Notes under the pieces: generated by a model | Databases searched by the model: none | What the model was told of the DNA's origin: nothing | Seen by the model: only the letters and a program-made list of their open reading frames with translations | Program-made: the position numbers and the translations under genes | Assembly (NCBI GenBank): GCA_038496445.1 | Contig: JALMLS010000579.1 | Location: forward strand, 62,001-126,000 | Direction: 5' to 3' | Length of the DNA stretch: 64,000 bases | Source: Trichosphaerium sp. ATCC 40318 | Lineage: Eukaryota > Protista > Tubulinea | Part shown: positions 1 to 44,801 of the stretch, in pieces | Layout of the letters: every line of letters begins with the position of its first letter | Position numbering within the stretch: the first letter of the stretch is position 1

Positions 1-1864
1 TTTCTAATTAAGTAAGTTAGTACGAAATTACTGTACACTACTAGTAGGGTCTACAGATAACAACACGTACTTGTGAGGGCGAGAGAAAATTTAGATTTTG
101 CACAAATCTGTGTTATCGCTGTTTTAAGTAATGCAATCTTTGTAGGAGTATAAGCATGCTTCCAGTGCCCAAGCCCTAGTTGTCCACAATCATTATTACC
201 CCACGCGTAGACGCTGCCAGATTCTACAAAAAAAACATTAGTTTTCCTTCGCGTATACCAAGCCATTGAGCTTGAAAGTATGAAGCCTCGCGCTAAAAAA
301 TTTGTGTACAAAAGTGATCACTTACTCGCTAATACCAAAGTGTGTCCACTGCCACAAACAATCTTATTAGCCTCAACGTCAGCGATTGGAATGAGTGTAG
401 GCTTCAACATAAATGTTACAGCACTACCCAAACCAAGGAAACCACCAGTTGAGCTGCCCCACATGTATACTTTATTATCGTCTAATCTCTCAATGAGTAA
501 CATCACCGCAGAGCCAGTATGGTGATTTTTCAAACAAGAAACCAAACAACGTACTTGAAATGGCACCAATACGTGTATCAGAAGATTCTTTATCAAAACC
601 AAGTGAGATACTGACTAGTTTTGTGTTGTTTGAAGGCAGAGAAAATCTCAACGTCTCCAAAGAATACCCAGATGATTTTAAAGAAGAGAAAGAACGTTGA
701 TTACCCCATAAATGTACTTCTCCATCTAATAACAAGTGAGCTGACTGATTTTAAACAATTTTGTTACACGTGTTTAGATATAAAACGCTGTGTCGTACCG
801 GCTATCGCTATAGTATTTTGGTCACTTGCATCAATAGCAGTGTATTTAATTTTACAAAATTCTTCTGGAAATTTGCTAACAGTGTACACTTTCTTGTCAT
901 GTGGACGGCCTAGTTTACCACTACGAGCATCTCCCCAACCATATATATCACCGCTAGCTATAACACCACGTGAGTACTATAAAAAGCGCCAAACAAGAGA
1001 CAATATGACACCATCACTAAAAAATGGCAAAAAAACACGACACCTCCTTGGGGAACAAAAAATACAAAAACAGAAAAAGTTAATGACAGTTCGTTCGTAC
1101 CTGTCAAAGCAACAGAATGTTCATTTGAACATCTTACAGATGTGAAACAAAGCGATAAATCAGTGTCTAGTTGGAAAAAAGATCCATTAATGTCCTTACA
1201 GTGTAGTTTATGCTTCTATCGATGAACAAGTAAGCAAGGCGTCACAAAATGATAAAAATAAAAAAACAAATCTCCAGTCGCGTCGTCTACGCCACTAAGA
1301 AGTTTCCTTCATTTTAAGGAATACAATTCATGTGTTTATGTACCTCTTGGCCAATACCCAACTGAGAATGAATATCCCATCCCCAGACATTTAGACTACT
1401 CCAAAGATCTCCTTTTTAGCATATTAGAATCACTTCTTTGGCATTTTTGATTTATGGTACCTCCAGAGCGATAACGCACGTCAAAGTCTGTAAAACACGA
1501 TACACATACCTATCAATGGTTTAGGGTAATTCGCAATTACTGTTTAGACCAAAATAGTGTATTTAGTCTGGAGGCATCACAATGCCGTGTAAATAGATGC
1601 TGGCGTACTCTGATCGGTGTATTGGTAATGTAGGACATAACAAGCTGGTAATTTGAGCAACGTTTACAGTATATATGGCCACAGTGCCTGCAATGGTGCT
1701 ATGACGTATCAGTACATTGTTGTACGCTCTCTATTTACCTTGCGTTTGAAAAGCCCAAATTCATCGTGACAGTGATAACAATTCTTCTGAGTACTATCTG
1801 GCATCCAATGGGAAGAATGGGTGGCAGGTGCACTATTTGCGATAGTTTTTGCAGGGCTTGTCAT
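1..1864 (-). CDS. FYVE zinc finger plus RCC1-repeat protein (multi-exon, 3' end outside window)
   Basis: Spliced translation gives WMPDSTQKNCYHCHDEFGLFKRK|HHCRHCGHIYCKRCS...RVCVSC (FYVE). RCC1 repeats follow: VWGWDIHSQLG, IYGWGDARSGKLG, VYMWGSSTGGFLGLG, VYAWGNNDCGQLGLG. Confidence 0.9.
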
Positions 1865-2449
1865 TTTCGAGCATACGTTACTTTGTATAACGCTTGTAGG
1901 GTGCAACTGAGACTTGGATACGTTGTTTTAATTCTCACGTAGAAAACTCACTTTTTTTCGTGTGTCGTGACACTGTTTGCAACTATCACAAGAAAAAGTG
2001 TTTTGACTAGTGAATATCGCGTTTTTAGTTGAATTCGGTTCGGGTATAGCGTTGTTGTACCAGAAGATCCGACAATGCTCGTTTTGCTCTCAAACGCTTA
2101 CTACAACGATCTAACACTTGTTTTGCCCTTTTTCTCCATTAAGAATTGAATAGTTTCCTAAATCGTAGTTGTACTGCAACAACAAGCGGAGTTTACCAAA
2201 AGCAGTTGTAACTGTTACAGTTAACCAGAACCCGTGCAAGTACTAGTAAAAAAAACCTGATATGAACCCACCTTTTATCTCTAACAACACCTCTTATGTA
2301 CACAAGGCCTTGACACTAACTGATTCCAACGTGGGACAAGCATAACAAAGGTCATTAAAACAGAACAAAGAAAAATAGCAATACGATCAAAAAACTTAGT
2401 TAAATCTTTTTTTTTCTAATGTGCATTATTAATTACTTTGTACAGCAAG

Positions 2450-5400
2450 TTACAGAATTTCATTGTCATTGTACTCAATTGGAGCATCCCAACCTTCTGC
2501 AATACCCAAAGGGTCAACTTTTTCATTAAAAGAAAAATCCTGTGGAAAAAGATCCGTTGAATTAGACCTTCGATTGCTAGCATAAAAATCGTTGAATCCT
2601 TGATGATGATGTTGTTGTAAATCCATCTCACCAAGATGTTGTTGATGATGATGATGAACATCATGATGATGGTGTTGTTGATGATGAAGATTATTAGTCA
2701 TCGGAGGAGGAGGATGAGGTTGTTGTTGATGGTACATAGGCGACGATTGAACGTACCCTTGACTGTAATGTGGATGATGCCCATAAGGGGCTACAATGTG
2801 GTTGTGCTGCATGTTGTACGAGTGTTGTTGTTGTTGCGTATGTGTTGTGTATTGTACGTGCTGTTGTTGCTGCTGCGTTGTGTGAATTTGATGAGGATGT
2901 TGGTAATGGTGACCTCCGTATACAGACGTAGCAGTATGACTGATTTGCATCTGTTGTAAATGGTGTTTCGCATATTCCATATTATGAAACTCTTGAACAC
3001 GTCTTTGTTGATGCTGTAATGGCTTACTACCAACTTGAGCAATATTAAAGTTAGGATCAATAGCAAACTCAACAGTAGGAGAATGTGTAGACTCGCTATT
3101 AGTCTCTGATCCTTGAGCAAAGCTCAAATTATACTCTTCGTTGCTCATTGACTCTGTAGAGTCTCCTGATATAGTATCAGACGTAGCAAGCGGTCTTCTT
3201 TGGATAGACTCCGTTTTTATAAACTTCTTCTTACTTCTTGAGCCTTTTGTCGTAGATTTAGTTGAAGCGCTTTGTCCGTTGCTTCTTTTACTTAAAGAAG
3301 ACGTAGAACTTGCACTACGAGGTAAACTAGACCTTAAAGATTCTTTTGTAGTACTAGTATTACGACAATGATTTTGAAGCGGCTTATTCGTTTTTTCGTA
3401 ATACTGTGTTCTAAAACACTTCATAGGTTTACCAAGTGCATAAATAACATTCCAGCCATTGTAAGGACCACTATTTTGGTTCCTCGCTATAAAAAAAAAC
3501 GAGAATGAGTCAAGAAAGCCGAAAAGTTTTTTACCATTTTTGGACAAAAAAAAAAAAAAAAAGGAAAAAAATGACCTCCATACAAAAAGAGTTATCCTTT
3601 GTTGTCTATGACGTACATTGGGCTACATGAAGTGCAAAAGTCGATAGGCTTTGGTATTGCTCGTTACGCCAAGCAATTTTACCTGTAGCGAGGAGTATCC
3701 CCGCGTCTGATTCAGGTGAATCTTTTTTAAAGTACAGTTTCTCTTTCGCAGATAATAAATTCGTTTTAAGTAGGTCTAATAGTGTTACCCTTGGGTTATC
3801 CTTCTAAAATAATACATCATGTAAGTAAAATAAACCTTGTATTTAAAAATAAAAGGAGTTGAAAGGTTGTGTCGCCAAAAAAGACAAAAAATTTCCAAAA
3901 AAAGAGAAACGAAAGGGCAAAAAGTACGCACGGTTTTAGAACGACGCGACTTCTTTGTTACAGCTGCTTTACGTTCTTTAGTAGCCTTTTTAGGCTTTTC
4001 TGTTGTTGTAGTCCTATTAGAACTAGTTCTACGACGTTTCTTGGGTGGTTCTGAGTCTGCAATGACAGATGAAGAACGTTTCATTTGAGTTCGTTTTCTT
4101 TGTCGTTTTGGCTCAGGAAGAATCGCTTTAGTCTTTTTATTGACTCCCTTGCGCTAGTAAACGATAAGAAAAACAAACGAAAACGCTTTTGGTAAAACGT
4201 ACTGTGCTAACAGGAGAGCTTCGCACTGGTGAGCTTATATCGCCTCTTTTCCTTCGACAAAAAGCGCAAGAGCATAATCCACGACAATAAAGACATTCCC
4301 AATTATTAGGGTCAAGTTCAGATATATTCTCATGGTAGTGGCGATACAAGCAACCTTTGCAGTATTTCTTAGTGCATTCATTCTATAACAAAGTTAGACA
4401 CTATGTATATTACAACAATAATAAAAAAACCGATTGAGCAAGGCACCCAATACAAGAAATGACAAACAAACAAAAAAAAAATGAAAAGTTTTTTTTGACA
4501 GTTGCACAAAAGAGCGTACTTTATGGAACCTGGAGCAATATATTACGCTTTCATGCTTTTGTTTACATTGGTGGCACCACATTAGAACGTTTTGTTGCTT
4601 CTTTTTTACTGAAGCCTGAAAATACAAGTTAATACGAGTAGAACAATAAACCCCGATAGAATACGTACCTTACGCTTTGATGGTGCTGGTTTTACGGTTT
4701 TAGGCACGACTCGTGACTTTCGGAGTGGTTTTGGAGTAACACTCTTGCTACGTGTCCTGTGGGGTCTATCACTGGCATCAATCTACAAAAAGTAAGCATA
4801 CAATAACCTCAAAAAGCAATAAAAATACATGTGTAAATGAAAATCAATAAAACATGTAGATGCTAAGAAAGGCAACTATTACGCACGTCAATGACTTCAG
4901 GCCCTTTGTAGAATGCTTGTGGTAGCGGAGAATTCAATAATCCCCAATAACCAGACCCTGTTTAACGGTTATTAGCGAACTTAGCCTCAAACAGTCTTAT
5001 GCGCACCATGCTTAGCTGTTATAAATATATCTGTGCGTGTAGTGATTTGAGCATTTAGTGTAGCCCACCATGTTACTGTCCCTGGTTGGTAATTTATGAG
5101 CATGTACTAGGACAAACAAAAGCGTTCTTGGGCGAAAAACAAAAACAAAAAAAAGCAGGTAGTGAACATTTATCGTATTATTTTTGCGTTAGCGTACTTT
5201 GTCTGCCAAGGCAAAGGGAGTTCCAGTTGTTATTGACGTATGGTACAACGTCTTGTTTAACATGGTAAAAGCGGCGTTTATGTTCCAAACCAAGGTTAAA
5301 TAGTGCTGTTACTGCGACTTCAAGCCTACCATAAACGTTATATTGGTACGTAATGCAAAAAAGAGAAAACGGTTCGCATAGCGATAACTCAATCTACGCA

Positions 5401-5792
5401 AGATAAGGACAACTGCTTCGCGTAGCTTCTCGCGTCATTCGCTATTTTGAACCCACAAGTCCAGTTGATTAGCGTACCATGTCTTGTCTCTATGCTTGAA
5501 TGTACAAGTGGTCCCTGTACAAGTAGCACACCTGTATTCATACGCTTCATCGCCTGGACCAGGCAGAATTTTTATGTACTCCAGAGTAGCTAGGCGTAAG
5601 CGTCAGCGTTAGTTAACCAGGTGAAGTCAAAACGTCTTTTTGTTGTTTTTTGAATAAAATAGGGCAATCCTTTTGCCTACCATGTGTTACGCAGCCACAC
5701 TGGTAGCACTTTACGTCGCAAGTGTACTCTGTGTCGTTGTTCGCAGTTGTCTTGCCATTTATCGACGCCTCGCTGGTACTAGGTGAAGCCAT
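2450..5792 (-). CDS. Multi-domain chromatin reader: atypical PHD-like Zn finger plus winged helix (ASH2L/Polycomb-like type), zf-4CXXC_R1 (CDCA7 type), RAMA domain, Q/H-rich tail
   Basis: ATG at 5792; hand-spliced exons stay in frame. Motifs in order: CYQCGCVTH..GDEAYEYRCATC..TWLEVAVTALFNL..VVPYVNNNWNSL..TWWATL..GYWGLL; WCHQCKQK..C..C..KYCKGCLYRHY..WECLYCRGLCSCAFCRRKRG; RVTLLDLLKTNLL..GILLATGKIAW..YQSLSTFALHV..NGWNVIY..GKPMKCFRTQY. Confidence 0.8.
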
Positions 5793-6027
5793 GTGTTTAG
5801 CGAAGTGAGGTGCCCGAAGAACCCCTTTCTTTGGTTCTGTTTATTGAAAAGGTGACGCTAGTATCGTATGTGTATAGCGTAACGCTTCATCTGCAACTGG
5901 CGCTAAGTACGTTCAGTCTCGTAACACTTTTCGCAGGTCTTTGCTAAATTTGGTTAAGACTGTGCAGTGACCACACTTTTTTGGCCAGGTCCTAACACCG
6001 AAAACGCTAACTTGTAGCAGGTTTAAA

Positions 6028-7580
6028 ATGTCAACTGTTTGTGTTACTGGAGCTACTGGGTTTATTGCAAGTCACATTGTGGCACAGCTTCTCTCTGCAG
6101 GTATGCAGCATTCGTAATAAATTGCAAAAATGTGACACCAACAAAAGGATACAATGTTAGAGGCACAGTGCGGTCACTTGAAAGAAGTAATTATGGATTC
6201 TTGAAACAAATGGGAGAAAAGCATGACAACAGGTTAACACTAGGTATTTACGCGTCCTTTTACTAAACGGGCTAATCACGCAATAGTTGAGGCTGATTTA
6301 ATGAAGGTTTGCGCTATTATTGTTCTATGGTTCTATGGCGTAACGTAATAACAAGGAAAGCTCTTTTGACGAAGCTATGAGTGGTTGTGATTATTGCGTG
6401 CATACAGCCGCTGTGGTATCTTTACACTCATCAGGGGACCCTATGAAGACTATCATTGAGCCAGCGATAAAAGGTAACAAGACATCTACAAATGTCGCTT
6501 ATTTAAGTGTTGAATAGGTACTCTGAACGTATTGAAATCGTGTGCGAGAGCCAAAACGATCAAAGTACGGTGTCAGACAGAAAAAAAAATTAATCCATTG
6601 TTAGCGCGTTGTATACACATCTTCTGCAGAAGCAGTAATGTCACATCGTGCAAAACCTCCACCAGTTACTACAGAAGAACACTGGGACACAAAATGCACG
6701 CAATCTAGTGGGTAAGGCGCCAAAAAAAGGAAATTAATAAAATCCATATTTGATAATATTAATACTACATTAGCGCATACATTTACGCCAAGAGATTATC
6801 AGAACAAAGAGCTTGGGCGTTTGTAGAAGAAACTAAGGCATTTGAAATGATTACTATTTGCCCACATACTGTCCTTGGACCGATTCTTGGTGATCGTGTT
6901 GCCTTGTCAAACTCTGCTGTAGAAAGTATTCTATCTGGTGCTTATCCGCTTGTTCCAGCGTTTAACCTTCAAGTATGTGATGTAAGAGATGTAGCTCGTG
7001 CACATGTCTTGGCGTTATCAAAAGAGCAAGCAAACGGCCGTTATATCGTCACTGGTAAGTTATGAGTGTAGGTAATATAGTATCAACCTTATGCAGGTCG
7101 CCCTGAAACCCTTTCTGGACTTGCTGCCAGATTACAAAAGCTGTTTCCGACAAAACCAATCTCATCTTTGGTTATGCCAGCCTATCTTATGTATATGGTA
7201 CGCCAATGCAGTGTTCTATTTGCTATTGTATTAAGTGAGTATAGGTTGTACCTTTTGAGCCAAGGTTAGACATGGAAGATGTTACAGGGTTCATATTTTA
7301 CAAACCTACTTATTGTAATGATAAAGCAATTCGAGATTTATCTTTAGAGTTTACTGACATGGATGTAACGCTTCGTGATACAGCACAAAGTATGATAGAT
7401 AAACACTTGGTAAAGTACGTGCACTTTGCTGATAGTTTCGAGTATATTAAGAGGAGAGGTTATGGAATACCTAATTTTTTGTATAGGACTGCATTCCATG
7501 CAACCAAAGAATTTTTTTATGGCGCCATTGCTTGTATTTTTGTGTTGGTAGCTTGTGGGTACTATTACTATGTAATATAA
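6028..7580 (+). CDS. NAD(P)-dependent epimerase/dehydratase (cinnamoyl-CoA/dihydroflavonol reductase-like extended SDR) with C-terminal hydrophobic anchor
   Basis: MSTVCVTGATGFIASH (GxxGxxA), VHTAA, VYTSS, YIYAK (YxxxK), DVRDVARAH. All introns are GT-AG. Ends FFYGAIACIFVLVACGYYYYVI. Confidence 0.93.
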
Positions 7581-25212: not shown

Positions 25213-26471
25213 ATGTCGGCTATTCACAACAACAATAAGCGTGTCTACAGTACTTCAACATACAATTGCACTAACAAGTACGTTAATACTCCATCAACAA
25301 CGCCTAAAACGCCCGTGTTCTATTTCAAACAGTCAAAATAGACTGTAAAAGAACGCAAGTTGCAAAAATTTGGGTAATACAACAGTTTGTACCATAAAAA
25401 GTTCGGGCTGTCTCGGGGTTGTACGAGAAAGTACGCATAGAGTAGTTTTCCAACAGAGGGAGAAACAGTAAAACCGATCGCTTTCTGATCGTTTTTTTAC
25501 GCTCAGTGCAACCTCATTCGCTCAGAATTGATACTGAAACATGTTTAAGGGCGAACAGTTTCCTTTAAATCCAAAAACAGACCATTTTTTGGTTTTCGGA
25601 AGATAGAAACAGTTTTTTCGGTTTTTTTTACAATTTGTCTGACCTTACATTTAGTGGCCTTCACTGCCTTGCTGGTCTACCTAAAGGCGTCCAAAGCGAG
25701 ATATATAACTTAGACGATAGAATACATAACATATGGCCGAAATTATGCCGCGTTCTAGCCGTGTGTTCCCGATATACGCCAACTTTACAAAGAAACGGGA
25801 CATTTAAGAAATTTTACCAAAACGATCAAATCAAGACTTTGACGAATTACAAGTCGAATACACGACATGGAAAGCGTATGACATGGTATCCAGATGGTAC
25901 TACTAGAAGCTCATTATCTTACAAGGCCGGTAAGCTTAACGGTAGTCATGTATGTTGGTATTCAAACGGACAAATTGAAAAAAAATGTTGCTTCAAATTA
26001 GGAAAACTTGAAGGTCCTCACGTGCAATGGTTCAAAGACGGACAAATGAGAACAGAAGGGACATATATAAATGATATGATAGAAGGTCCTTATAGGATAT
26101 GGCACGCAAATGGAGAGCTACAAGCTCTTCATTCATGTAAAAATAGTCAAATCGAAGGAGAATACAAATACTGGCATAAGAACGGTCAGTTAGCCTTTCA
26201 TATATTCTGTAAGGATGGTAAGATAGAAGGTCAGTATAAGGAATGGCATATAAACGGTAATCTGTGGAAAGTATGTTTCTACAAGAGCGATAAGATTGAT
26301 GGAGAATATCGTATGTGGCATGTCAATGGGCAGCTTTGGAAGCATTGTTATTACAAGAATGGTGTACTAGAAGGTGAGTATAAAGGGTGGCATGACAATG
26401 GAAGGTTATGGAAGCATTGTTTCTATAAGAGAGGCAAGCAAGCTAGTGTTATCTCAGCGACCTATTGTTAA
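25213..26471 (+). CDS. F-box-like N-terminus plus MORN-variant (MORN_2/YwqK-like) repeats
   Basis: Exon 25213-25277 joins 25654 in phase 2. LAGLPKGVQSEIY..WPKLCR is followed by about nine 24-aa repeats (G.Y..WH.NGQL...C.YK.GK). Confidence 0.85.
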
Positions 26472-29382: not shown

Positions 29383-30201
29383 TTAAACATGTGAACTAGT
29401 TATTTTTACACTTGAGCTTGGTCCTCTTATCGTTACAAGCAACCTCCAGTTTCCAGTTGGAATAGTAATAGCACGAAATTGTTCGTTATGTTCAACACCA
29501 AGTGTGTTACCGAGGATGCTCAAGGTCACTTGATCTCCAATAAAATTAACACCTTTTGGAGCGCTCTTTATCCCTTGTTTATACTCATTGTTGCCGTACC
29601 AGCCATAAAAAGAAGGCAAGAAATACGGGCTTTTAGCATCTAAAAACCTATCCTTTTCATAATCGTTTAGAATGCCCACACACAACAGGTAGTTGCCAAG
29701 GTTTCTGTCGATCTTTAATTTCCAAGTCACTCTCCTGTAAACATTCGTTCCAAGTAAGTTGTGTACCTCTGTGAGGATATATGTCCTATATGAGAGCAAC
29801 TCAATCTGTGAGCGCGTGGTATATTGCTTGGAGAATGTGTCTAAACTGAGCTTTGTTATCTTGGAAAGACCTAAGAAGTCTACAAGGTTCGCGAACTCTT
29901 CATCTCTGCTACAAGAAGCGAAGGTTGTGGAGATTTCTCTTGAACTCTTCTTTTGCCTGGCAGAAGATCTGAGCACTCTTAAAATTAAGGTAAAGTAATC
30001 TGGGTCAAAGTCCAGGAAGATAGTGCCGTTCTTGTCACGATTATGCTTGTTCCATCGTCCGTTGAACATAATTTCGAGAAAAGAGCCGGGAACACTACAA
30101 AGAGTACGTCTAGTTGTAGTAAAGAGCTTACCACCAATGTTTAACTCTATAATATCGTCATTTGTATCTTCAATAGCCTCGTTTTCTTTCTGTTGTGCCA
30201 T
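29383..30201 (-). CDS. Intronless KCTD-type BTB/POZ protein with beta-rich (SPRY-like) C-terminus
   Basis: IIELNIGGKLFTTTRRTL..PGSFLEIMFNG..IFLDFDPDYFTLILRVLR. First in-frame ATG at 30201. Confidence 0.88.
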   Translation of the reverse strand: MAQQKENEAIEDTNDDIIELNIGGKLFTTTRRTLCSVPGSFLEIMFNGRWNKHNRDKNGTIFLDFDPDYFTLILRVLRSSARQKKSSREISTTFASCSRDEEFANLVDFLGLSKITKLSLDTFSKQYTTRSQIELLSYRTYILTEVHNLLGTNVYRRVTWKLKIDRNLGNYLLCVGILNDYEKDRFLDAKSPYFLPSFYGWYGNNEYKQGIKSAPKGVNFIGDQVTLSILGNTLGVEHNEQFRAITIPTGNWRLLVTIRGPSSSVKITSSHV

Positions 30202-30692
30202 TTGTAAGATTGAGTTTATTTGGGGTTTTGTGTTTGCGTTGGAGTTCTTTTTCTCAGTGCTCCCACAGTGGACTAAGTTGTTTGGTACAAAAATAATTAT
30301 GTTTTTTAGTTTTATCACGTGACTTTGTTGATTCGTGGTTTTGATAAGCAAATCAAAGTACTATTAAAGAACAGTGGTGGGCTTGCACTGACATCACCTG
30401 CACAGGACTAGAACATTGTTTGATGGACACATTCTCAGTAATTGTGGTTGGCCATTGAAAGTAGACTTTTTTTATTATTTTGCCTTTCTCACCATCTAAA
30501 AAGGTATGTACAAATTTTGATAAATGCCTTTGCGTAACAGAGGAGTAGTGAAGTTGCGTATGGGATCTTGAGGTAGAGAAAAAAAATAGAAGAAAGAGCA
30601 TAACACCAAACCAATGCGTAAAAAAATTTGGGCTGATTTTTTTGGTGTTTTTCTTTTCCTCTTTTTTTTCCCTGTTGTTGTTGTTGTGTTGT

Positions 30693-33942: not shown

Positions 33943-35009
33943 ATGGAACAGGACGGAAGGCTAATTCCATGCAATGATTCCAAAAACGCGCCTCTTGCAA
34001 AAAAAAAGCTAACGGATGATGACGTACGCCGAAAAATCAGACTTAAAATTTTTTTATTTTTTTATTGGTTTGTAACGTTTGGATATAGCACAAAATACTA
34101 TCAAGCATTACTACATTGCTCCAACAAGGTTTTGCCATAATTAACCAGTCATCCGTTGGAGATAAAGAACTAGCCACCAAAGTGCTTTCAACAGCCGTTA
34201 ACTCATGGGCCGTTTACGCCAATCAGAGCAAAGAATATGAAAAGGAAATATGGGATACACACATTGAAAGAATGAATGAACAAATAGCTCGGTTGCTCTC
34301 TACAAACTTTGCGCTTTGTCATGATCTTTTATTATTGATTGCAAAATCACTTGACTTTCCTACAATAGAAAAAGCTAGAAGCGTATGTAAAAGGTGGAGA
34401 CAAGAACTGGGCGTTTCAAGCGTGTACAGAGCAAAGATTAGCGAAATATTTAATATGTCACAAGCCAAAATTGGCGTTTTGGACGAATCTCTCACGTGGA
34501 GGAGAGTATGTACTTGTATACATACAAGTACAAAGTATACAATGAAAGCAGGTAGTACTGATATTGGGAGAGAATTATTTAAAAAACTAGATGGGAGATT
34601 GCTACAACCTATAAAAGAGAAGGAATCACTCATTGATGCGAATAATAGATCAACGGAGTATTTATCGGTTTATGTCTTTTACAAGCCAGCAAGGCCTTTC
34701 TTATTAGAGATGGGGTGTACATCACGTCATAAGGTTACAGAAGCGTATTGGATAAGTTTTAAATCAATCGATGAAGCAGACCAGATTCAATTAGTTTATT
34801 TGAGCTCAATTTACAAAAAAAAAAACTTCAATTTCTGGGGTTTACAAGAATTTTGTAAGAGCTTAGACTTAGACATGACGGTAGACCAAGACCTTTCGGA
34901 GTCTTTTAAAAGATCTTTTATTCATACATTTGGCGATATATTCAACCAAACTAGTCTAGGAGAATGTCAGATAAGCATTAGCGAATATTACAGGGAATGT
35001 TTCTTTTAA
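33943..35009 (+). CDS. F-box protein
   Basis: Two exons; LCHDLLLLIAKSLDFPTIEKARSVCKRWRQ. Confidence 0.8.
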
Positions 35010-43606: not shown

Positions 43607-44801
43607 ATGATCACTAACGCACCAGATGAACTGCTTAGGATAATGAGTGGTCTAGATGGACAAGTAAACAACTTTGCGATTGACATAGTTATTAATAGTT
43701 CTTAAGGTCTACAAGCTATGGCCTACATTGTCTAGACGGTTTGCTATCGCTTCTCGGTTCAATAAGCAGTTTAAAAAGCATGGTGAATGGAGACGCTACA
43801 AAACAGACGAAACACAACTTTTACGCGTCTGGAACTTCAGAAATGGCCAGCAGTGTGGCGAAGAAACGAACTGGTACAACAACGGCACCAAACAGAACGA
43901 ACTACTGTACGCGACATCCAAACGAGGAAAAGACTGCTTATTCACGTACAACGAATGGCGGAATAACGGCACTCTTCTTTTAAAGTCAACAAAAAAACAA
44001 GGAGTCTATACTGGAGAACGTACATACTGGAGAGAAGATGGAACACTTTGGGAGAGTTGTGTATTCCAAAACGGGAAAAAAAACGGACCTTACACTCTTC
44101 GGTCCCTCGACGGTGCCTTGGTAGCACAGGGTGTACACCAAGATAACTCCCTTGATTACAATGTTAAAGAGTACAGAAGTGGCGTTCTCATTTCAGAAAA
44201 GAAACAAGACGATAAAGGCACTGTAACACATACTAGGTACAAAATAACAGGTGGTATATCTCTTACATGTGTTAATTACACTGATGGCAAGGAAGTCTAT
44301 ACTACTTACCATGATAATGGTATTCAGTTTAATGTTAAGGTTTATAAGAAGGGTAGCCTTGTTGAAAACACTTCTTGGTATGAAAACGGTGTTATGAAGT
44401 CAACCCATACACTTGATAAAAAAGGAAAGCCAAAAGGTTGTGTGAGAAGTTGGCATGATGATGGTTCCTTGGCACATGAGAGCAATTTTGTTCGTGGAAA
44501 GATGGTTGGAAAGAGAATGTATTGGTATAGAGATGGTAGTGTGGAGAAGGAGTGGACATATGATGAGTTTGGTGACGCACAAGGTGAGATGTTTTGGGAC
44601 AACGGAAAAATAAAAGAAAGATGTTTTTATAAAGATGGTGAGGCTGTAGGATCGTTTGAACAGTTTAATAGAGATGGTATTATTTTGGAAGATAAGTTAA
44701 TAACAAAGAATGAGAAAGAAGAGTACTTGAAAAAGACTCTTGAACGTACAGAAAAGTGGAACAATAGGCGCAATCCTGATTGGGAAGAAAATCCAGAATG
44801 A
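43607..44801 (+). CDS. F-box-like N-terminus plus MORN-variant repeats (paralog-like to 25213 gene)
   Basis: MITNAPDELLRIMSGLDGQ|VYKLWPTLSRRF is followed by WY.NG/W..DG repeats. Confidence 0.85.

Follow-up and report, generated by a model that had tools for sequence, protein, structure and literature searches.

A gene on the minus strand of contig JALMLS010000579.1 of Trichosphaerium sp. ATCC 40318 raises the question whether a single protein combines a winged helix of the type found in ASH2L and Polycomb-like (PCL) proteins, a cysteine-rich finger of the CDCA7 type (zf-4CXXC_R1) and a RAMA domain, and whether such a protein would read the methylation state of DNA. The gene is located at 5792..2450 in the stretch of 64,000 nucleotides that was analysed (contig positions 62,001-126,000, forward strand; hereafter the window, to which all coordinates refer), which is eukaryotic DNA with a G+C content of ~38% and short introns. 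The gene has 11 exons, of which exons 1-10 are represented on one cDNA, and its product is homologous to the three domain families, in an order that appears to be new. The protein is most likely a lineage-specific multivalent binder of DNA or chromatin and a candidate methylation reader; the three homologies are sound, but a transfer of the three specificities from the homologues is not.

Gene structure and transcript evidence

The sequence-only reading, made from the letters of the window without database searches, had joined separate open reading frames (ORFs) by hand into one in-frame gene at 2450-5792. Script-checked hand-splicing gave the same coordinates and one open frame of 777 codons, running from an ATG at 5792 to a stop codon at 2452-2450 on the minus strand, and confirmed the observation of one multi-domain gene. 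The exons lie at 5792-5681, 5589-5478, 5325-5198, 5081-5007, 4957-4887, 4782-4669, 4615-4520, 4382-4203, 4153-3932, 3803-3617 and 3486-2450 and are separated by ten introns of 49-152 nt, all of the GT..AG type. The donor sites of these introns are strikingly uniform, with the form GT[AG]CG[CT] in nine of the ten and GTAGGC in the remaining one, and CTAAC or TTAAC is found just upstream of the acceptor in several of them.

Two public runs, here named X1 and X2, hold parts of this stretch. A single X2 contig of 1461 nt, which matches the window without mismatch, spans 5951 to 3632, and its nine joints correspond base for base to introns 1-9, the skipped segments reading CT..AC on the plus strand. 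The loose end of this contig, at 5951, matches the SMART template-switch oligo in reverse complement, so that the contig is a cDNA and ~5951 marks the 5' end of the mRNA, which gives a 5' untranslated region (5'UTR) of 159 nt (5793..5951). As the contig is spliced at introns 1-9, one mRNA carries the zinc module together with the winged helix, the CDCA7-type finger and 62 residues from the beginning of the RAMA domain. In run X1, the joint of intron 1 (5681/5589) was seen independently of X2, which identifies X1 as RNA-derived, and an X1 contig of 159 nt (2421-2579, no mismatches) covers the stop codon and the 3' untranslated region (3'UTR). The earlier claim that all modules reside on one transcript therefore stands for the part from the zinc module through the N-terminal part of the RAMA domain, but not for the joint between exons 10 and 11, which is contained in no contig and is discussed below.

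Two side observations concern run X1. Its contig across exon 9 (3968-4118) differs from the window at two positions, 4025 A>T and 4084 T>C, and X1 thus probably derives from a strain or allele other than that of the assembled genome. In addition, short contigs with a likeness of 90-95% raise the X1 depth to ~1600 at 2554-2680; the pile-up is a CAT/CAA (His/Gln) coding repeat that attracts contigs of other organisms and is no sign of expression.

Three known domains in an apparently new order

All domain searches were run on single exons and, hence, each score covers only the part of a domain that resides in the respective exon. The CDCA7-type finger is divided between exon 7 (4520..4615, minus strand, as are all features of the gene), which begins the domain with WCHQCKQK... 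and contributes Cys 1-3, and exon 8 (4203..4382), which holds its main part with Cys 4-11. Exon 8 alone matched the Pfam family zf-4CXXC_R1 (PF10497) over profile positions 28-78 of 99 with 39.9 bits (E 5e-10; cut-off 22.7), and the solved CDCA7 finger 8tle with an E-value of 7.5e-9 in HMMER. The score above the gathering cut-off together with the 11-cysteine pattern makes the domain a member of the zf-4CXXC_R1 family. The motif in exon 7 aligns to CHQCRQKT of eight metagenomic CDCA7 sequences.

The N-terminal part of the protein contains nine Cys/His residues in a pattern that was recognised by no library. Exon 1 (5681..5792) encodes the start codon and the first half of this zinc module (C25, C29, C32, C34, H37), and exon 2 (5478..5589) encodes the second half (C58, C61, C66, H70) and the beginning of the winged helix. 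The core of the winged helix is encoded by exon 3 (5198..5325), which matched the Pfam family ASH2L-like_WH (PF21198) over profile positions 7-48 of 104 with an E-value of 3.9e-4 and 21.1 bits (cut-off 25). The best solved chains for this exon in the PDB search were MTF2 5xfr (E 1.4e-3) and PHF1 5xfn (E 4.7e-3), and a search against the ESM-Atlas gave no match. Exons 4 and 5 (4887..5081; 5081-5007 and 4957-4887) presumably encode the remainder of the winged helix with the presumed wing loop 'FITAKHGSGYWGL', an assignment that we base on position and sequence pattern.

The finger is flanked by two basic linkers with 34-39% K+R and PKKRRR-type motifs. The first is encoded by exon 6 (4669..4782; 34% K+R) and the second by exon 9 (3932..4153; 39% K+R), in which the motifs PKRQRKR and PPKKRRR resemble nuclear localisation signals. 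Exon 10 (3617..3803) encodes the N-terminal two thirds of the RAMA domain: this exon alone matched the Pfam family RAMA (PF18755) over profile positions 15-75 of 107, corresponding to 60% of the domain, with an E-value of 5.4e-8 and 33.2 bits (cut-off 35.2), and RAMA accounts for 24 of the 30 named ESM-Atlas clusters closest to it, with a top score of 0.91. Among solved chains, exon 10 gave no phmmer match. The last third of the domain (…GPYNGWNVIYALGKPMKCFRTQYY) is presumed, based on the continuity of the frame, to be encoded by the start of exon 11 (3389..3486). The rest of this exon (2453..3388) encodes an S/T-rich region, followed by an H/Q-rich low-complexity tail and a short end of acidic-hydrophobic character (…EGWDAPIEYNDNEIL); within exon 11, H makes up 18% and Q 17% of residues 151-344. 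The domain order zinc module plus ASH2L/PCL-type winged helix, zf-4CXXC_R1, RAMA and Q/H tail, which had been read from the letters alone, is thus borne out by the exon-by-exon matches in Pfam, PDB and Atlas and by composition.

We take the combination of winged helix, CDCA7-type finger and RAMA domain to be a new domain architecture, that is, three known modules in what appears to be a new order, and agree in this with the sequence-only reading, to which it was not known from any characterised protein, as it was found neither in the literature on zf-4CXXC_R1 and RAMA nor in our exon-limited sequence searches. The partners of zf-4CXXC_R1 given by Funabiki et al. are none, chromo, DDT/WHIM and JmjC. 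Those of RAMA given by Iyer et al. are JAB, SET, PHD, chromo, Tudor, bromo, BRCT, ARID, MBD, PARP-zf, AT-hook, RING, ankyrin and Dam, with zf-4CXXC_R1 and the ASH2-type winged helix both missing from the list; the Amoebozoa are outside the lineages named there for RAMA. A full-text search for the two domains named together returned only Funabiki et al., where 'rama' occurs once in a context that the search did not display.

On the sequence level, a phmmer search with the RAMA exon as query, covering 1.84 billion representatives, yielded a single match, to a fibronectin-repeat protein of 4212 amino acids, which was rejected as spurious because it was matched by summed repeats. The start of exon 11, used as query in a word search, gave no candidates, and no matches were found for the RAMA exon among viral contigs, for 8-mers of the finger exon among metagenome contigs, or in NCBIfam and PHROGs. 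A scan of the metagenome contigs with a degenerate finger motif returned 57 loci, which were canonical CDCA7 wherever the rest of the finger was in the same frame, many short loci showing only the CRGICNCSFCR end. When every exon was compared with these 57 loci by tblastn, only the finger was found, with no winged helix or RAMA domain nearby. At two loci (L003:10743-10814 and L044:2779-2850), the winged-helix exon 3 had a weak match (37% over 24 amino acids, E 0.21), located on the strand of the finger and ~1.1 kb downstream of it, which we judged to be due to chance. As these searches covered single exons, in collections that are poor in eukaryotic genomes, the absence of relatives is weak evidence for uniqueness.

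Possible functions of the protein

On balance, we favour the interpretation that the gene encodes an expressed nuclear protein of ~777 amino acids which strings together three DNA- or chromatin-binding modules and acts as a multivalent chromatin adaptor or transcription regulator. Nuclear location and DNA binding are predicted from the sequence, and the same would apply to any sensitivity towards 5-methylcytosine (5mC) or N6-methyladenine (6mA). In such a protein, the contacts of each single module with double-stranded DNA would be modest and would mostly be made at the level of the backbone or of dinucleotides. Avidity, either for one particular type of DNA or for linker DNA, would come from the modules and the basic linkers together, and the tail would recruit or concentrate partner proteins.

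Several results weigh against this interpretation. When searched singly, exons 1 and 2 gave no significant Pfam match, exons 4 and 5 no family or PDB match, exon 7 no Pfam or PDB match and the start of exon 11 no match in Pfam, NCBIfam or PHROGs. The scores of exons 3 and 10 are below the Pfam cut-offs for the whole domains because only part of the winged helix and of the RAMA domain, respectively, resides in one exon. At the 3' end of the gene, the joint 3617/3486 of intron 10 is bridged by no X1 or X2 contig, and no X2 contig was found for exon 11. Lastly, no homologue was found in the exon-limited searches, and conservation of the architecture is therefore missing as an argument for function.

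The sequence-only reading had assigned a more specific function to the protein, namely that of a combinatorial reader in which the winged helix recognises unmethylated CpG, the finger hemimethylated CpG and the RAMA domain 6mA, such that 5mC and 6mA states are integrated. Although all three homologies are real, we consider this assignment unlikely. According to Wassing et al. 2024, the finger of CDCA7 is placed in the DNA's major groove, where R274 makes a van der Waals contact to the methyl group of 5mC and forms a pair with the adjacent G, a second methyl group clashes with Q275, and R304 and S330 hold the backbone; the mutations R274C/H and R304H of the ICF syndrome (immunodeficiency with centromeric instability and facial anomalies) are predicted to disrupt DNA binding. 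We compared the finger with CDCA7 using the alignment to 8tle and eight complete CDCA7 fingers fetched from metagenome contigs. All 11 cysteines are kept, as is Q275, by which CDCA7 discriminates against a second methyl group, and both would suit a sensor of hemimethylated CpG. In contrast, R274 is replaced by K, R304 by H (with an R at 303), which is the same change as in the ICF mutation, G306 by H and S330 by A. The segment between Cys3 and Cys5 is rearranged (C3-x7-C4-x4-C5) with no Gly at the equivalent of G294, and the C-terminal helix of CDCA7 (TG[IV]L..LA…) is absent, FCRRKRG being followed by 'DISSPVRSSPVST', a proline/serine stretch, and then by the basic linker. In the reference fingers, R274, R304 and S330 are kept in eight of eight, and the TG… helix segment is present in seven of eight, the remaining one (L029) running off after 'TGG'. 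Because the arginine that contacts 5mC is a lysine here, the finger cannot work exactly as CDCA7 does, and its assignment as a sensor of hemimethylated CpG is not supported. A sensitivity of the protein towards 5mC or 6mA is possible, and if it is present, the mechanism of the finger would differ from that of CDCA7.

The other two modules give a similar picture. PCL winged helices bind DNA, and in PHF1 the CpG is read by two lysines of the wing loop and the backbone is held by K269, Y270 and K326. In the alignment of exon 3, K269/Y270 correspond to R/F, so that a basic/aromatic pair is kept, and the wing loop, as compared by eye, reads 'AKHGSG', seems shorter and shows no KK. As the CpG-reading di-lysine is not evident, the proposed recognition of unmethylated CpG is not supported. 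As to the RAMA domain, 6mA-selective binding by the RAMA domain of MPND was reported by Kweon et al. 2019, and the discrimination of m6A by RAMA was predicted by Iyer et al. from gene context. On the other hand, the paper on the MPND crystal structure describes that the RAMA domains of MPND and CcrM contact the backbone of double-stranded DNA and make no base contacts, and that 6mA left the binding affinity of MPND unchanged in vitro. A role of RAMA as 6mA reader is thus disputed. A transfer of the specificities from the homologues to the modules is, in sum, not sound, and a combinatorial 5mC/6mA reader should be regarded as a hypothesis.

The same RAMA domain could alternatively make the protein a dedicated reader of AMT1-type 6mApT in a unicellular eukaryote. 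Adenine methylation close to transcription starts would then be sensed by RAMA and the CpG state of the same DNA by the winged helix and the divergent finger, with the Q/H tail relaying the signal to the transcription machinery. AMT1-type 6mA, which occurs in amoebozoans, marks transcriptionally permissive chromatin and has no known reader according to the cited surveys, a circumstance that also speaks for the combinatorial reader. We rate this more specialised role as distinctly unlikely. The question is nevertheless of interest: a 2025 survey names the identification of 6mA readers as key, and a 2026 review states that no 6mA reader is known in fungi. Against this background, a RAMA protein with two domains of 5mC/CpG-sensing families represents a concrete and clonable candidate. 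Moreover, a CDCA7-type finger in a new setting and with altered contact residues bears on the generalisation that zf-4CXXC_R1 domains are sensors of hemimethylated CpG. If the modules were plain DNA binders, the gene would encode a lineage-specific chromatin protein.

The joint between exons 10 and 11

The multivalent adaptor favoured above comprises the end of the RAMA domain and the Q/H tail, both of which depend on a predicted splice joint between exons 10 and 11. Intron 10 (3487..3616, 130 nt, GTACGT...TATAG with a long T tract) would separate the two exons. We place the joint there because its donor GTACGT is of the same type as those of the other nine introns, no acceptor other than its own gives access to the exon 11 frame of 344 codons, retention of the intron leads to a stop 3 codons in, in the middle of RAMA, and the RAMA profile match is cut by the end of exon 10 at position 75 of 107. 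In addition, exon 11 begins with '…GPYNGW…', which we take to fit the terminal part of RAMA domains, although no tool detected this start of the exon when it was searched alone.

Alternatively, the locus may give rise to two products, if the mRNA terminates or retains intron 10 and encodes a protein of ~436 amino acids with a truncated RAMA domain, and the 344-codon frame of exon 11 is a separate gene or belongs to an alternative isoform. The two holes in the transcript coverage, at the 3617/3486 joint and in exon 11, would be accounted for in this way, as would the end of the X2 contig at 3632, 15 nt short of the donor, but such holes prove nothing by themselves. Besides the stop in mid-RAMA, the uniform donor and the sole acceptor, an open frame of 344 codons is not expected by chance in DNA of 37% G+C, the first in-frame ATG of the exon 11 frame lies 20 codons in, and the RNA-derived run X1 holds the end of exon 11. 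We therefore consider two products very unlikely.

Relation to CDCA7, ASH2L and Polycomb-like proteins

The finger is similar to that of CDCA7/CDCA7L, a class I protein that acts as hemimethylated-CpG sensor and HELLS adaptor, in its 11 cysteines, the CHQC.QK start, Q275 and the CRG.C.C.FCR end. In these proteins, the finger is located at the C-terminus, whereas it is central here and flanked by the winged helix and RAMA. Funabiki et al. 2023 define class I zf-4CXXC_R1 domains by the conservation of all three ICF residues, R274, G294 and R304. None of the three is kept here and the finger is, by this definition, not class I; it resembles the diverged class III-like fingers. The plant class III proteins of the IBM1/JMJ24 type and other diverged zf-4CXXC_R1 proteins, which occur with JmjC and are reported also in Amoebozoa and Naegleria, likewise have non-conserved ICF residues and a short Cys4-Cys5 spacing. 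They differ in their JmjC domain, which was not found in the exons of this gene, where the partners are winged helix and RAMA. The fungal CDCA7F proteins (class II) are described without any other annotated domain apart from one chromo fusion.

That the gene is the organism's CDCA7 orthologue, or CDCA7F-like, and encodes the hemimethyl-DNA adaptor of a HELLS/DDM1 remodeller with domains added, is highly improbable: it possesses a zf-4CXXC_R1 domain with 11 cysteines, but the ICF residues, S330 and the C-terminal helix are all lost, a HELLS-binding leucine-zipper region was not recognised and the finger is not C-terminal, and we rejected orthology to CDCA7. The arrangement in which the winged helix comes immediately after a zinc module corresponds to the N-terminal PHD-WH of ASH2L and to the PHD2-EH of the PCL proteins PHF1, MTF2 and PHF19. 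The zinc module is, however, no recognisable PHD. The SPRY/SDI of ASH2L was not found in the exons of the gene, SPRY giving no match in ten exon pieces at E-values up to 10 with exon 6, a basic linker of 38 amino acids, outside the scan. Tudor and PHD1, which are present in PCL proteins, were not found either: the exon scans gave no Tudor or PHD match, the winged helix has only 75 residues in front of it, and its wing loop, by eye, is shorter, with no evident di-lysine. We accordingly rejected identity with ASH2L, for which no SPRY was found in the exon scans, and with PCL proteins, for which neither Tudor/PHD nor a di-lysine of the W1 loop was apparent. A divergent ASH2L or Polycomb-like paralogue, serving as the subunit that targets a histone methyltransferase of the COMPASS or PRC2 type, is likewise highly improbable, its zinc module and winged helix being arranged as expected but SPRY, Tudor and canonical PHD being matched by no exon.

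With MPND, which consists of RAMA and MPN/JAB, the protein shares the RAMA domain; MPN/JAB was not found, no Pfam family being matched by exon 11 (344 amino acids) at E-values up to 10. RAMA is also common to bacterial proteins such as CcrM, from which the protein differs by the lack of a methyltransferase or nuclease domain.

Promoter region and neighbouring ORFs

The cDNA-supported 5'UTR contains an upstream ORF of 10 codons (MKRYAIHIRY; 5858-5890, minus strand) that starts at 5890. The 5' end of the cDNA at 5951 is only ~88 bp away from the ATG (6039) with which a divergent gene on the plus strand starts, and the two genes therefore probably share a very short bidirectional promoter. The product of the divergent gene begins with MSTVCVTGATGFIASHIV, a Rossmann GxxGxxG start, and a later exon-like ORF at 6847-7062 gave no Pfam match. 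The next downstream ORF on the strand of the three-module gene (1709-1906, minus strand) has a partial match to the FYVE zinc finger with an E-value of 3.2e-4, below the cut-off. Further away in the window, the long ORFs at 25635-26471 (plus strand), 43728-44801 (plus strand), 29383-30351 (minus strand) and 34116-35009 (plus strand) encode MORN_2 repeats (two of them), BTB_2 and F-box.

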